Below are positions 28,334 to 37,300 of a stretch of DNA of 64,000 nt, in pieces. Numbering within the stretch: the first letter of the stretch is position 1; every line of letters begins with the position of its first letter. Under the pieces are notes generated by a model. The model saw only the letters and a program-made list of their open reading frames with translations. It did not search any database and was not told the DNA's origin. The position numbers and the translations under genes were made by a program. Source of the stretch: Macrostomum lignano (Eukaryota); the NCBI GenBank assembly GCA_002269645.1, contig NIVC01000035.1:496001-560000 (forward strand), written 5' to 3'.

Positions 28334-31300
28334 ATGATGACAATAACAGCGTGCTCTCGGACAGTGCAGCAGCAGCAGCAACAGCAACAGCAACAGCAGC
28401 TTCAGCCATCGGACAGTTTCCTAGAGAAGTCGATGGAAATCAGCCCAATCGGACATCAGATGAGCTACTTCACTCTGACTCATCAGCATCCTCAGCAGCA
28501 GCAGCAGCAACAACAACAACACAGTCCGCCAGAGCAGCCAGGCCAGACTCCTTCATCTCTGCTCCTGCAAGACGTGAAGCCCAGCTGTTTGCCAGTAGAA
28601 CCCTCTTGGTCAGGCGGTCACGGACTCGACGGTGTACCCGCCCAGACGCACGTGTACTTTGCCAGCTACACCTTGGTCAGCAACGGGGCACCGGCTGCAG
28701 CCTTCCAACAGCAGCAGCAGCAGCAGCAGCAGCAGCAGGCGATGCCTCATCTTCCACCAGAGTACATCGCAGCCAGTCATGTGCAAGTGGCCGCCAACGC
28801 GTCAACCTCGGAGACGAACGACTGCTCAGTGATGCAGCAGCAGCAGCAGCAATTTGACAGCAGCCACATGCAGTATCACCAGCATCAGCAACACCAGTTG
28901 CAGCATCCATCGACGCTCCATAATCATCCTCATCATCATCATCATCATCAGCAGCAGCAGCAGCAGCAACAAGTCCAGCACCAGGATGGCTCACCGATCT
29001 ACCTCAGCACCGCCGAGTCATATCACCAGCAGACTTACCATGAGTATCAGCAGCAGCAGTTTGCGGACCATCAACAAATGCACCATCAGCAGCTTCAGCA
29101 GCGGCAGCAGCAGCCACCACCGCAGCTGCCGCAGCAGCATCAAAGACAGCCGTCTGGCTCAGATGAGCACTCAGCGACGGCAGGAGGAGCGGGCGACCCC
29201 GGCGAGCTGTGCCTCTTCAAGGCTGTCGAACGTCGAGCCTGCGACGTCTGCGGCGACACCGCGGCCGGATTTCACTGCGGCGCCTTCGTGTGCGAGGCCT
29301 GCAAGAAGTTCTTCATCAGGTCGACCAGGGCCGGGATGCAGGGCGGGCTGGGGATCAAATACAGCTGCAGCAAGGTGGGCCGCTGCGACGTTACCAAGGA
29401 GACCAGGACTCACTGCCAGCACTGCCGGTACAAGAAGTGCCTCATGCTGAACATGTTCCCGCCTGGTGAGTTTCTGTCCTGTCTATCTATCGATCTATCT
29501 ATCTATCTTATCTATCTATCTATCTATCTATCTATCTATCTATCTATCTATCTATCTATCTATCTATCTATCTATCTATCTATCTATCTATCTATCTATC
29601 TATCTATCTATCTATCTATCTATCTATCTATCTATCTATCTATCTATCTATCTATCTATCTATCTATCTATCTATCTATCTATCTATCTATCTATCTATC
29701 TATCTATCTATCTATCTATCTATCTATCTATCTATCTATCTATCTATCTATCTATCTATCTATCTATCTATCTATCTATCTATCTATCTATCTATCTATC
29801 TATCTATCTATCTATCTATCTATCTATCTATCTATCTATCTATCTATCTATCTATCTATCTATCTATCTATCTATCTATCTATCTATCTATCTATCTATC
29901 TATCTATCTATCTATCTATCTATCTATCTATCTATCTATCTATCTATCTATCTATCTATCTATCTATCTATCTATCTATCTATCTATCTATCTATCTATC
30001 TATCTATCTATCTATCTATCTATCTATCTATCTATCTATCTATCTATCTATCTATCTATCTATCTATCTATCTATCTATCTATCTATCTATCTATCTATC
30101 TATCTATCTATCTATCTATCTATCTATGTATCTATCTATCTATCTATCTATCTATCTATCTATCTATCTATCTATCTATCTATCTATCTATCTATCTATC
30201 TATCTATCTATCTATCTATCTATCTATGTATCTATCTATCTATCTATCTATCTATCTATCTATCTATCTATCTATCTATCTATCTATCTATCTATCTATC
30301 TATCTATCTATCTATCTATCTATCTATCTATCTATCTATCTATGTATCTATCTATCTATCTATCTATCTATCTATCTATCTATCTATCTATCTATCTATC
30401 TATCTATCTATCTATCTATCTATCTATCTATCTATCTATCTATCTATCTATCTATCTATCTATCTATCTATCTATCTATCTATCTATCTATCTATCTATC
30501 TATCTATCTATCTATCTATCTATCTATCTATCTATCTATCTATCTATCTATCTATCTATCTATCTATCTATCTATCTATCTATCTATCTATCTATCTATC
30601 TATCTATCTATCTATCTATCTATCTATCTATCTATCTATCTATCTATCTATCTATCTATCTATCTATCTATCTATCTATCTATCTATGTATCTATCTATC
30701 TATCTATCTATCTATCTATCTATCTATCTATCTATCTATCTATCTATCTATCTATCTATCTATCTATCTATCTATCTATCTATGTATCTATCTATCTATC
30801 TATCTATCTATCTATCTATCTATCTATCTATCTATCTATCTATCTATCTATCTATCTATCTATCTATCTATCTATCTATCTATCTATCTATCTATCTATC
30901 TATCTGTCTATCTATCTGTCTATCTATCTATCTATATATCTATCTATCTATCTATCTATCTATCTATCTATCTATCTATCTATCTATCTATCTATCTTTA
31001 TAATTGTATCTATTTATCAGGTGAGATTTCAATAATTCAGAAAATGAATAGCACTAAGAGATGGTCCAATATTGAGGCCTGCAGCTCAAAAGTTTAGCCA
31101 ATGCAATACGTGCATGCAGCTCTCAATTTCATACTGCGCTGCACTTTCTCCTTTAAACTGCATTGCACACAACCGAGGCGCAGCGATCTGCGCAATTGGA
31201 GCCCAAATCGCACTTTGACCTCTTCGTACTCGATTTTCACCGGTTGAACTCCCTGCTATTCATGACGACTGCAGAAGCAGTAGGAGCAATCTAAATCGCC

Positions 31301-34300: not shown

Positions 34301-37300
34301 TCGCTGCCGTTAACGAATGCCCGTCTCTCCCTCTCCCTCTCCCTCTCCCACTCTCTCTCCCTCTCCCTCTCCGTCTCCCTCTCCCTCTCCCTCTCCGTCT
34401 CCCTCTGCCTCTCCCTCTCCATCTCCCTATCCCTCATGTTTTCTCCATTCCCCCTCTCCCATAGCTACCTCTAAATCCCATCAACACGTCATAAACAATG
34501 GCTGCCCAACAAAATGCTCACTCCCTACTCTGCAGGGCTTCTTCCGCCGCACCATCAAAGAGCGAGACGCCGGCAAGTACATCTGCAGCAAAGGTGGCGG
34601 CTGCGAGATCAACCAGCAGAGCCGGAATGCCTGCAAGAGCTGCCGGTTCGCCAAGTGCATCCGCGCCGGCATGTCCTCCGATGGTGAGGGTTCAGGCGCT
34701 GCGTTGGGATCAGATTGTACACCGCACCGGATCCTTGTGCTTCACCATCAGCTCCCAGATCCTTCAGTGCTGCACCATCACCTCCCAGAATCCCAGATTC
34801 TTCAGTGCTGCACCATCACCTCCCAGATCCTTGAGTGCTGCACCATCACCTCCCAGACCCTTCAGTGCAGCAACATCACCTACCAGAATCCCAGATCCTA
34901 TAGTGTTGCACCATCACCTCCCAGATCCTTCAGTGCTGCACCATCACCTACTAGAATCCCAGATCCTTCAGTGCAGCACCATCACCTCCCAGATCGTTCA
35001 GTGCGGCATCATCAGCTTCCAGATTCTTCAGTGCTGCTCCATCAGATGCCACCTTCAAAGGAAGTGCAGCCTCTCCTATCTCTTCTCTTCTCTACCTAGA
35101 TTTTTTCCCGTTGAAAATGTTTGGAGCATTTCTATTTTGCTGCCCAAGCAAAAAAGAAAAGCGCGTGTTTTTGGGATTTGTAGAGTGTAGGGATAGAGAG
35201 GGATAGGAGGGAGAGGAGAGAGAGAGGAGGTCGCGGCGCCCACATGCCCTGCGCCGTGCGTGCCGGGCTGTATTAAGTGGCGAAAGGCCTCCACAGTCCC
35301 CCCCCCCTTAAAGTCGCGAGCATATTTTATTTAGCCGACGGCTGAGCCTCAGACAGAGCTGGCACACAACTGGCTGTAGAGACGGCTTGCCCGGCGCTAG
35401 TGAGGACCTCGTTTCTGGAATCTGGGCCGCCGCCGCCGCCGCCGCCGCCGCCGCTCCTAGGAGACCGACAACCCCCATTCCGAATTGAGCGAAGGGGAAG
35501 GCGGCATCATCTCTTTCCTTAACTCTCTCTCTCTCTCTCTCTCTCTCTCTCTCTCTCTCTCTCTCTCTCTCTCTCTCTCTCTCTCTCTCTCTCTCTCTCT
35601 CTCTCTCTCTCTCTCTCTCTCTCTCTCTCTCTCTCTCGAGCTTTCAAGGCCTTGCTTGAAGTGCCAGGCACACAGAGAGCTTTGGGGCTTTTGAGATCTC
35701 CTTTTCTCTTAACACCTCGCGATCCCAAAATAAAGTCCGCCCTCCCCGCCCACCCGTTAAGCTTTAATGCCTCGCAAATACTGACGCTAAATATTCAGTG
35801 AACACTGAACTGACACCCGGGGACAGTGATCATCCCTTGTGTTTTTTTTCTCTTACCCCACTCGCTTGTTGTTGTTGAAAAGTGGCAAATTTGACAGCTG
35901 AAATGTCGAATCTATAGAACTCTTCTGCAATGATTGCTGATAATGTTTTGACAGTCGGCCTATCACAGTGCCTGTCTTAGTGCCTGTCTCAGTGTCTGTC
36001 TTGTGTCTGTCTTAGTGTCTGTCTTAGTGTCTGTCTTAGTGTCTGTCTTAGTGTCTGTCTTAGTGTCTGTCTTAGTGTCTGTCTTGTGTCTGTCTTAGTG
36101 TCTGTCTTAGTGTCTGTCTTAGTGTCTGTCTCAGTGTCTGTCTCAGTGTCTGTCTTAGTGTCTGTCTTAGTGTCTGTCTTAGTGTCTGTCTTAGTGTCTG
36201 TCTTAGTGTCTGTCTTAGTGTCTGTCTTAGTGCCTGACTTAGTGCCTGTCTCAGTGTCTGTCTCAGTGTCTGTCTCAGTGTCTGTCTTAGTGTCTGTCTT
36301 AGTGCCTGTCTTGTGTCTGTCTCAGTGTCTGTCTCAGTGTCTGTCTTAGTGTCTGTCTTTGCGCCTGTCTCAGTGTCTGTCTTAGTGTCTGTCTCAGTGT
36401 CTGTCTCAGTGTCGGTTTTGGTGTCTGTCTCAGTGTCTGTCTCAGTGTCTGTCTCAGTGTCTGTCTTAGTGTCTGTCTCAGTGTCTGTCTCAGTGTCTGT
36501 CTTAGTGTCTGTCTCAGTGCCTGTCTCAGTGCCTGTCTTAGAGCCTGTCTTAGTATCTCAGTGATTGTCCTAGTGTACCCCATAATGTTAATCTTTTATA
36601 TTGTGATCAAAAGTTTATATCTTAGTTTCTGGCCGTATCATGCTATCACGTGGTTTTTTTATCTGGAACATTTCTATACACGATTTCTTACAGCCTGAAA
36701 ATCCTACTGCAAGTAGACCGATAAGCAAATTACTGAATTCCTTCGTCTTTCGAATTCCTTAGGCAGCCGAATCGGTCGCCAGCCGAACGCCGTGAAGCAC
36801 CTGTGCGCCCAGGAGATCAAAGAGATCAACAAGACCCGACAGCATCGCCAGCCTCATCACCTCCAGCATCACCAACTGCAGCAGCAGCAGCAGATGCTGC
36901 ACCAGCATCACCAGCAGATGCAGGGATTTCAACTGCAGCATCCGGCAGCTCAGCATCAGCAGCATCAGGACTACCTCGCCTGCCAGACACAGCAGCAGCA
37001 GCAGCATCAGGCGCTGCATCATAATCAACCAGAATCCTCAACAGCTGCCTCTTTTGCAGCTTCATCAGCCGACAACGATTTCATTGAAAGCGTCAGGCAA
37101 GCATTTTCAAGGCTGCAGGCGGCTCTGCGGGCTGTGGCGCTGCAAGATGCGGAAGAATCCGTTGATGACGAAGACTCTGACGAAACCGGCTCCAAGGCCG
37201 TGCTGAGTCGCCTCCGTCAGCTTGGCCGCGCTGTCCAGACCTTCTGCCAGCAGCTGCCGGGCCTGGCCACTCTCGATTGGCGACTCAGGAGCCGCCTGCT

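Follow-up and report, generated by a model that had tools for sequence, protein, structure and literature searches.

The window analysed here comprises 64,000 nucleotides (nt) of the flatworm Macrostomum lignano (GenBank assembly GCA_002269645.1, contig NIVC01000035.1, positions 496,001 to 560,000 of the forward strand) and carries a gene for a nuclear receptor with two DNA-binding domains (DBDs), that is, a 2DBD receptor. The coding sequence is distributed over six exons which together encode 805 amino acids (aa; Table 1, coordinates of the window); the exons 5 and 6 of the putative ligand-binding domain (LBD) were positioned by comparison with the deposited protein PAA89302.1. Pfam zf-C4 matched twice in the spliced DBD region (E = 5e-45), all eight Cys are present in each domain, and the P-boxes read in the translation are CEACKKFF in DBD1 and CEGCKGFF in DBD2, the pair that is characteristic of group A of these receptors. 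Pfam Hormone_recep gave no match at E <= 1 on exon 4 and none on the open reading frames (ORFs) downstream; a weak alignment of exon 4 with the LBD helices known from other 2DBD receptors reached E = 6e-4 at best.

Table 1. Exons and main introns of the 2DBD receptor gene in the M. lignano window.
Feature	Positions	Strand	Length (nt)	Phase	Content
Coding exon 1	28334..29465	+	1132		Gln/His-rich A/B domain and entire DBD1, P-box CEACKK
Intron 1	29466..34142	+	4677	1	JP2-type junction after DBD1
Coding exon 2	34143..34249	+	107	1 to 0	Linker and zinc finger 1 of DBD2
Coding exon 3	34536..34683	+	148	0 to 1	GFFRR and zinc finger 2 of DBD2, to GMSSD
Intron 3	34684..36762	+	2079	1	Canonical JP2 intron after DBD2
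Coding exon 4	36763..37545	+	783	1 to 1	G-box, Gln-rich hinge, first part of the LBD
Coding exon 5	38667..38765	+	99	1 to 1
Coding exon 6	38864..39012	+	149		Includes TAA stop; C-terminal LBD, AF-2-like LLDEL motif

The gene is Ml2DBD-NRA1, a member of 2DBD nuclear receptor group A (NR7A, locus family Mlig015099). The best match among 1.84 billion representative proteins was the 802-aa PAA89302.1 (BOX15_Mlig015099g1), from which the window model differs by 7 mismatches and which appears as Ml2DBD-NRA1 in Table 6 of a published survey (PMC10497141). The sister copies g2, g3 and g4 exist, the deposited M. lignano proteins being PAA89302.1, PAA93023.1, PAA81052.1 and PAA92993.1; several near-identical copies of the gene are thus present in the genome, and the g1 and g4 copies show 4-7 residue differences in addition to other poly-Gln and poly-His tracts. 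The closest is PAA93023.1 (Mlig015099g2), with 801 of 801 aligned residues identical and four additional Gln in the window, all within the poly-Gln tract at 28700-28720 of exon 1. Given this identity and the junctions of the deposited models, the gene of the window was already catalogued, and its protein does not differ from the catalogued one beyond the length of poly-Gln. According to that survey, group A receptors carry the P-boxes EACKK (DBD1) and EGCKG (DBD2), 17-22 residues between the DBDs, a pre-Grip of five residues, the G-box RXGRQ(P/S) and a His five residues on (Wu and LoVerde, 2023, PMC10497141). In the window the inter-DBD linker has 17 aa, the pre-Grip five residues and the G-box reads RIGRQP, with a His five residues past it. 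The catalogued Ml2DBD-NRA1, which belongs to the orthology group of Schistosoma 2DBD-gamma, is this gene, and the two agree in the pair of P-boxes, the G-box, the length of the linker and the order of the domains.

An earlier note on this DNA had described both DBDs as ending at an intron that splits, in phase 1, the ninth codon past the last Cys, with donors at 29466 and 34684, and upon re-reading these coordinates proved to be exact. The zinc fingers of DBD1 are encoded in exon 1 without an intron between them, CEACKKFF being contiguous, and this exon ends with CCG CCT G/GTGAGT (the slash marks the exon-intron boundary) in phase 1, so that the codon split by the GT at 29466 is the ninth past the last Cys. 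DBD2 is divided between two exons. After a CAG acceptor, exon 2 opens with GC, which completes a GGC Gly codon, and closes in phase 0 at CEGCK/GTGAGT; exon 3 opens with GGC TTC TTC (GFF) and closes in phase 1 with GAT G/GTGAGG, again at the ninth codon past the last Cys. Exon 4 opens with GC AGC CGA ATC GGT CGC CAG CCG AAC, read as SRIGRQPN after the split codon and followed five residues later by the His. Introns 1, 3 and 4 are largely made of tandem arrays. In intron 1 a (TCTA)n microsatellite (about 379 units over 1.5 kb, 98% matches) spans 29482-30997, starting 17 nt past the DBD1 donor; further on lie a 12/24/36-nt array (32453-32931) and a 22-nt array (33613-34097). Intron 3 is rich in 30/68/98-nt arrays (34730-35044), (CT)n (35523-35637) and a 12-nt array (35967-36558), and intron 4 holds about 31 copies of a 30-nt unit (37666-38581).

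Nuclear receptor genes share four conserved junctions, of which JP1 is located inside the DBD and JP2 at the fourth residue of the hinge (Wu et al., 2007, PMC2045677). Counted from the GM that ends the DBD, this fourth hinge residue is the ninth past the last Cys, which is the position of both introns of the window. JP2 (phase 1, ninth codon) occurs after DBD1 (29465/29466) as well as after DBD2 (34683/34684), and JP1 (phase 0 after the CK of the P-box) occurs in DBD2, at the exon 2 donor AAG/GTGAGT (34249/34250), and not in DBD1. A single-DBD gene, the fish ROR-alpha-like control (P0131 on L009), reads THSS(1)QIEIIPC...CEGCK(0)GFFRR...C-LSVGMSRD-A(1)VKFGR, where the numbers in brackets are intron phases; the exons of this cassette measure 86 and 142 nt and its upstream phase-1 intron lies six codons before Cys1. 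As the control has this layout, an ordinary receptor DBD is a cassette with the phases 1-0-1. JP1 and JP2 of the DBD2 of the window match the fish ROR gene exactly, and the M. lignano gene differs from the canonical organization (ROR/HR3, TR) by its doubled cassette, the intron after DBD1 being a second JP2, and by the first cassette copy having lost JP1, by which DBD1 became fused to the A/B exon. The two matching introns of the window are two copies of the canonical JP2, which occurs twice because the DBD cassette occurs twice. Since JP2 is found at an equal codon and phase in the single-DBD ROR, it marks the standard DBD cassette and not specifically a tandem self-duplication.

A comparison with intron positions in other 2DBD genes had been proposed along with the initial reading, and these turned out largely to agree in codon and phase (Table 2). 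Ten further loci from six phyla were mapped, nine of them 2DBD loci covering groups A and B and the tenth the fish ROR control, by means of a purpose-made exact spliced mapper run on the homologue loci; the DNA was inspected by eye where a model ran through a donor. At each of the eight 2DBD loci with both positions readable, the two DBDs are followed by JP2 in phase 1 and at the ninth codon, and JP1 is present in both DBDs at seven 2DBD loci (the first seven of Table 2). Within M. lignano, PAA89302.1, PAA93023.1 and PAA81052.1 share all four junctions of the DBD region with the window model. At the trematode locus JP1 in DBD1 was rated as probable because the frame breaks before KFF. The Cichlidogyrus gene, as the one in the window, is devoid of JP1 in DBD1, and retains JP2 after DBD1 only. 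Loss of JP1 from DBD1 was considered as a common flatworm trait and rejected, as the trematode locus appears to retain the junction there.

Table 2. Junctions in and after the two DBDs at the 2DBD loci compared (numbers in brackets, intron phase; slash, exon-intron boundary).
Locus	Taxon	DBD1, P-box	After DBD1	DBD2, P-box	After DBD2
Capitella	Annelid	CEACK(0)KFF	C-LALGMYKP-G(1)	CEGCK(0)GFF	GMKAD-G/GTGAGT
Helobdella	Annelid	CEACK(0)	C-ISLNMYGP-G(1)	CEGCK(0)	Unmapped, model runs past
Rotaria	Rotifer	CEACK(0)	C-KIIGMTVK-E(1)	CEGCK(0)	C-IKVGMSVE-G(1)SRIGRQ
Bulinus	Mollusc, group B	CLPCK(0)	C-ISAGMYRK-E(1)	CEGCK(0)KFF	C-ITEGMSRE-D(1)
Tegillarca	Mollusc	CEACK/GTACGT	C-LQLKMFCP-A(1)	CEGCK(0)	C-LEANMSIE-A(1)SRIGRQ
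Glandiceps	Hemichordate	Phase 0 after P-box	Phase 1, ninth codon	Phase 0 after P-box	Phase 1, ninth codon
Lottia	Mollusc	CEACK(0)	Consensus GTAAGC donor, ninth codon	CEGCK(0)	T/GTGAGT, ninth codon
GCA_900618425.1	Trematode flatworm	JP1 probable	C-LRLGMVLP-G	CEGCK/GTGAGC	GMSKD-G/GTGAGT
Cichlidogyrus	Monogenean flatworm	JP1 absent	C-IEIGMYLK-D(1)	CEGCK(0)	JP2 absent

The dimensions of the cassette are also conserved. The finger-2 exons measure 139-157 nt at the mapped 2DBD loci, and the exon for the linker and finger 1 of DBD2 104-119 nt at seven loci, the longest being that of Glandiceps with its preferred acceptor; in Rotaria an extra intron divides this exon into 96 and 26 nt. The full DBD2 cassette, at the five loci with both exons measured, consists of 104-113 plus 142-148 nt (249-261 nt) and is always a multiple of three with phase 1 on either side. 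The codon split by JP2 varies: it can encode Glu in Rotaria, Glu or Asp in Bulinus, Asp in Cichlidogyrus, and Ala in Tegillarca as well as in the ROR gene. As the junctions are common to the mapped loci, the doubled-cassette structure would be ancestral to the whole 2DBD subfamily; the shared introns probably go back to the ancestor of every 2DBD receptor, whether of group A or B and whether from protostomes or the hemichordate, and would not be particular to this gene. The split of the subfamily into its two groups is described as having already taken place in the ancestor of the bilaterians (PMC10497141).

From the junctions observed, their conservation and the identity of the gene, a mechanism of recombination and its timing may be inferred. 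Very probably the canonical DBD cassette was doubled once, in ancient times, so that the paired introns are two copies of JP2 and the possibility of skipping DBD2 in frame is a by-product. The standard cassette would have had a phase-1 intron upstream, the phase-0 JP1 right after the ...C-K of the P-box and the phase-1 JP2 in the fourth hinge codon; a second cassette would then have come into frame when a JP2 intron recombined with the phase-1 intron that precedes a DBD cassette, and the inter-DBD intron (intron 1 in the window) would be the hybrid intron left by the doubling. This is envisaged as a single event before the protostome/deuterostome split and before groups A and B diverged, of which intragenic tandem duplication would be the simplest version; the M. 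lignano gene would afterwards have lost JP1 in DBD1 and retained the other three junctions. The process resembles the classical duplication or shuffling of phase-symmetric exons in that a 1-1 module (107 + 148 nt here) is set in frame between phase-1 introns. It differs in that the event would be very old, the copies being now only 44-54% identical, and in that the donor of the second copy may be either the same gene or a paralogue. The proposal that the second DBD arose by tandem duplication of an exon module can therefore be kept in part: the comparative map gives good support to the view that this DBD is an exon module placed between phase-1 introns, each DBD being a complete cassette of two exons in most phyla, while self-duplication goes beyond what the junctions carry, JP2 being canonical and the ROR gene being alike.

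Other explanations of the matching introns were weighed. Parallel gain of two introns at similar G/G proto-splice sites, or plain coincidence, could be suspected from the fact that both junctions lie in a ..G/G.. context and that the split codon is often Gly; however, an intron at this codon and phase follows each of the two DBDs at the eight readable 2DBD loci and also the DBD of the single-DBD ROR, JP2 is documented as an ancestral junction of receptor genes (PMC2045677), and the split codon is sometimes Glu, Ala or Asp instead of Gly. This possibility appears vanishingly small and, as far as the mapped sequences indicate, is effectively refuted. A more serious competitor is capture by exon shuffling, in which recombination inside phase-1 introns would have brought in the second DBD from a paralogous receptor gene of the NR1-like kind; the shared intron positions would in that case merely follow from the layout that all receptor DBD cassettes have in common. 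The ROR gene has the three junctions with identical phases, DBD2 is at least as close to the ROR DBD (51-59% pairwise identity) as to DBD1 (44-54%), the residues preceding its first Cys (..IPC) resemble those of ROR (..IIPC), and in a phylogeny DBD1s and DBD2s formed separate clades, each sister to NR1, the wording "a recombination event" having been used (Wu et al., 2007, PMC1810520). Against capture, two loci must recombine in register, whereas tandem duplication takes a single event within the same gene; DBD1, whose P-box EACKK is unique to the 2DBD subfamily, may simply be the faster-diverging copy, and no donor paralogue was identified. Capture is considered a possible but distinctly less probable route, and intragenic tandem duplication is favoured as the simpler one.

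Several points weigh against the ancient doubling as outlined above. Since DBD1 and DBD2 are no closer to each other than DBD2 is to ROR, tandem self-duplication is not demonstrated over paralogue capture, and intron positions do not discriminate between a DBD2 copied from DBD1 and a captured cassette because every NR1-type DBD cassette shares the junctions. A conserved phase-1 intron just upstream of DBD1 was not seen in the mapped genes, the postulated recombination partner being found only in the ROR control. The timing is based on one hemichordate locus together with the published phylogeny. Several of the comparison gene models are automatic predictions, and for Lottia, Capitella, Glandiceps and the trematode, whose models were wrong, the junctions were re-derived from the DNA.

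The 2006 Gene paper is reportedly the first description of 2DBD genes and is said to include a JP1/JP2 analysis. The gene, its two DBDs, JP1/JP2 and the idea of duplication or recombination as the source of the extra DBD were already published, the last having been proposed from phylogeny in terms of "DBD duplication" and "a recombination event" (Wu et al., 2007, PMC1810520). The suggestion that the arrangement had not been described holds at most for the intron phases of the DBDs: neither phase nor position of the introns of the two DBDs is given in the literature consulted on 2DBD receptors, the platyhelminth receptor survey or the oyster and Nematostella papers, although the 2006 Gene paper may contain them. 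What is added is modest, namely a map across phyla in which each DBD of a 2DBD receptor takes the form of a complete canonical cassette whose introns agree in position and phase. It provides gene-structure support for a single ancient doubling of the cassette, and the junction rule offers a practical means to repair many faulty 2DBD gene models.

The symmetry of the cassette has a consequence for splicing. The two DBD2 exons amount to 255 nt (85 codons) and, as the cassette is 1-1 phase symmetric, the join of 29465 to 36763 stays in frame; an open frame of 720 aa results, in which DBD1 precedes the G-box at the spacing of DBD2, the GGC Gly being restored and the G-box again preceded by five residues. 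The frame and the spacing given in the earlier note were thereby confirmed. If splicing toggled the number of DBDs and the P-box, one gene could switch its specificity for DNA sites. Regulated skipping of the cassette, yielding a one-DBD receptor in which DBD1 (EACKK) is joined to the G-box and the target-site specificity is switched, was accordingly weighed, and the annotated Glandiceps model P0116, which joins the finger-1 exon of DBD1 to the finger-2 exon of DBD2, indicates that an in-frame one-DBD product was at least modelled by an annotation pipeline. That model is named, however, after the single-DBD receptor HR3, and homology to single-DBD receptors may have shaped the annotation.

The remaining evidence speaks against such skipping. 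Both DBDs are found in all four deposited M. lignano copies, with 802, 801 and 804 aa and both domains in three of them and a 5'-truncated model of 471 aa starting inside DBD1. Among the 140 homologues retrieved no EACKK DBD stands directly before a G-box, the EACKK-only proteins being all fragments or reading into the intron after ...PPG. Three intron-less database contigs keep both DBDs (P0150, 766 aa; P0152, 813 aa, on five contigs) or DBD2 with the DBD1 tail in which the model starts (P0108); they are apparently transcripts, judging for P0150 and P0152 from contigs that barely exceed the coding sequence. No member about 85 aa shorter was seen in the clusters around ten close relatives. A search of the hypothetical skip protein against the 1.84 billion representatives returned no EACKK domain followed by the G-box, the single-stretch matches being DBD2-only models, knirps-like proteins and other single-DBD receptors. 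In addition, exons 2 and 3 have splice sites close to the consensus, as judged by eye and unscored (donors AAG/GTGAGT and ATG/GTGAGG, acceptors ccttcccatccgcag/G and ctccctactctgcag/G), unlike those of typical alternative exons. The built-in switch between one- and two-DBD isoforms is hence unsupported by the deposited models, the homologues and the intron-less contigs, and regulated skipping seems quite improbable. A one-DBD form would be speculation at present, as no sign of its use appeared in the protein models, homologues and intron-less contigs compared, M. lignano RNA reads lying outside the comparison. Equally slight is the chance that living cells exploit the 1-0-1 phases of the doubled cassette, be it by a JP2-to-JP2 skip in M. 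lignano or, where both DBDs keep JP1, by a JP1-to-JP1 skip such as that of the annotated Glandiceps model; each of these skips would yield a one-DBD receptor with an altered P-box.

Several relatives of the gene were found to be mis-annotated. The "putative nuclear hormone receptor HR3" of Glandiceps talaboti (GCA_964340395.1, L008 10001-15593) is really a 2DBD-NRA gene; its model P0116 omits two exons, DBD1 finger 2 (10662-10818) and the linker with DBD2 finger 1 (14930-15048), a JP1-to-JP1 join that creates a hybrid single DBD with the P-box EACKG, all four exons being intact in the DNA. No hemichordate was noticed in the species coverage of the available text of PMC10497141. The 1126-aa "DBD2-only" model of the trematode GCA_900618425.1 (L010 2770-2943, 10001-10123) proved to be a truncated prediction, the DBD1 finger-2 exon lying about 7 kb upstream; its annotated start, MASIP, is a read-through of the intron just ahead of the linker exon. 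Similar representatives (P0216, P0219 and P0238) begin just before or inside the equivalent linker exon. In Lottia gigantea (L002 6560-6575) the donor of the JGI model LOTGIDRAFT_77665 lies 6 nt upstream of a consensus G/GTAAGC donor at the ninth codon, so that the model is probably two residues short (..MFCP-G). A second M. lignano 2DBD model, P0097 (UniRef A0A1I8JCV8), is about 70% identical and probably represents the paralogue Ml2DBD-NRA2. It is devoid of the end of DBD1 (...THCQFC/KNPAIVAS...), the last Cys and the nine codons preceding the intron being gone, which suggests that an incorrect donor was chosen in the model; from the related fragment P0015 most of finger 1 of DBD2 is missing as well.

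A gene of the Delta/Jagged type (MNNL, DSL and EGF domains) adjoins 2DBD-NRA in Capitella (L001 12169-13243) and in Glandiceps (L008 1-2248), and this arrangement may be a conserved microsynteny. In the M. lignano window a 222-aa ORF on the - strand at 816-1484 matched the QRICH1 domain with E = 2e-5, which is sub-threshold for Pfam. Downstream of the receptor gene a further tandem array, (TATC)n, occupies 40246-40762, followed on the - strand (41326-44468) by two adjoining ORFs with reverse transcriptase (RVT_1, E = 7e-31) and RNase H (E = 1e-15) domains, which mark a retroelement just downstream of the gene. Arrays of a 21-nt repeat (GATTGGGAGATGAGACACTGA) are present at 41178-41319 and 43793-44248, the second overlapping the 5' part of the reverse transcriptase ORF. 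Finally, a 319-aa ORF on the + strand at 60851-61807 showed a strong match to the AIG1-family GTPase domain (E = 1e-35).

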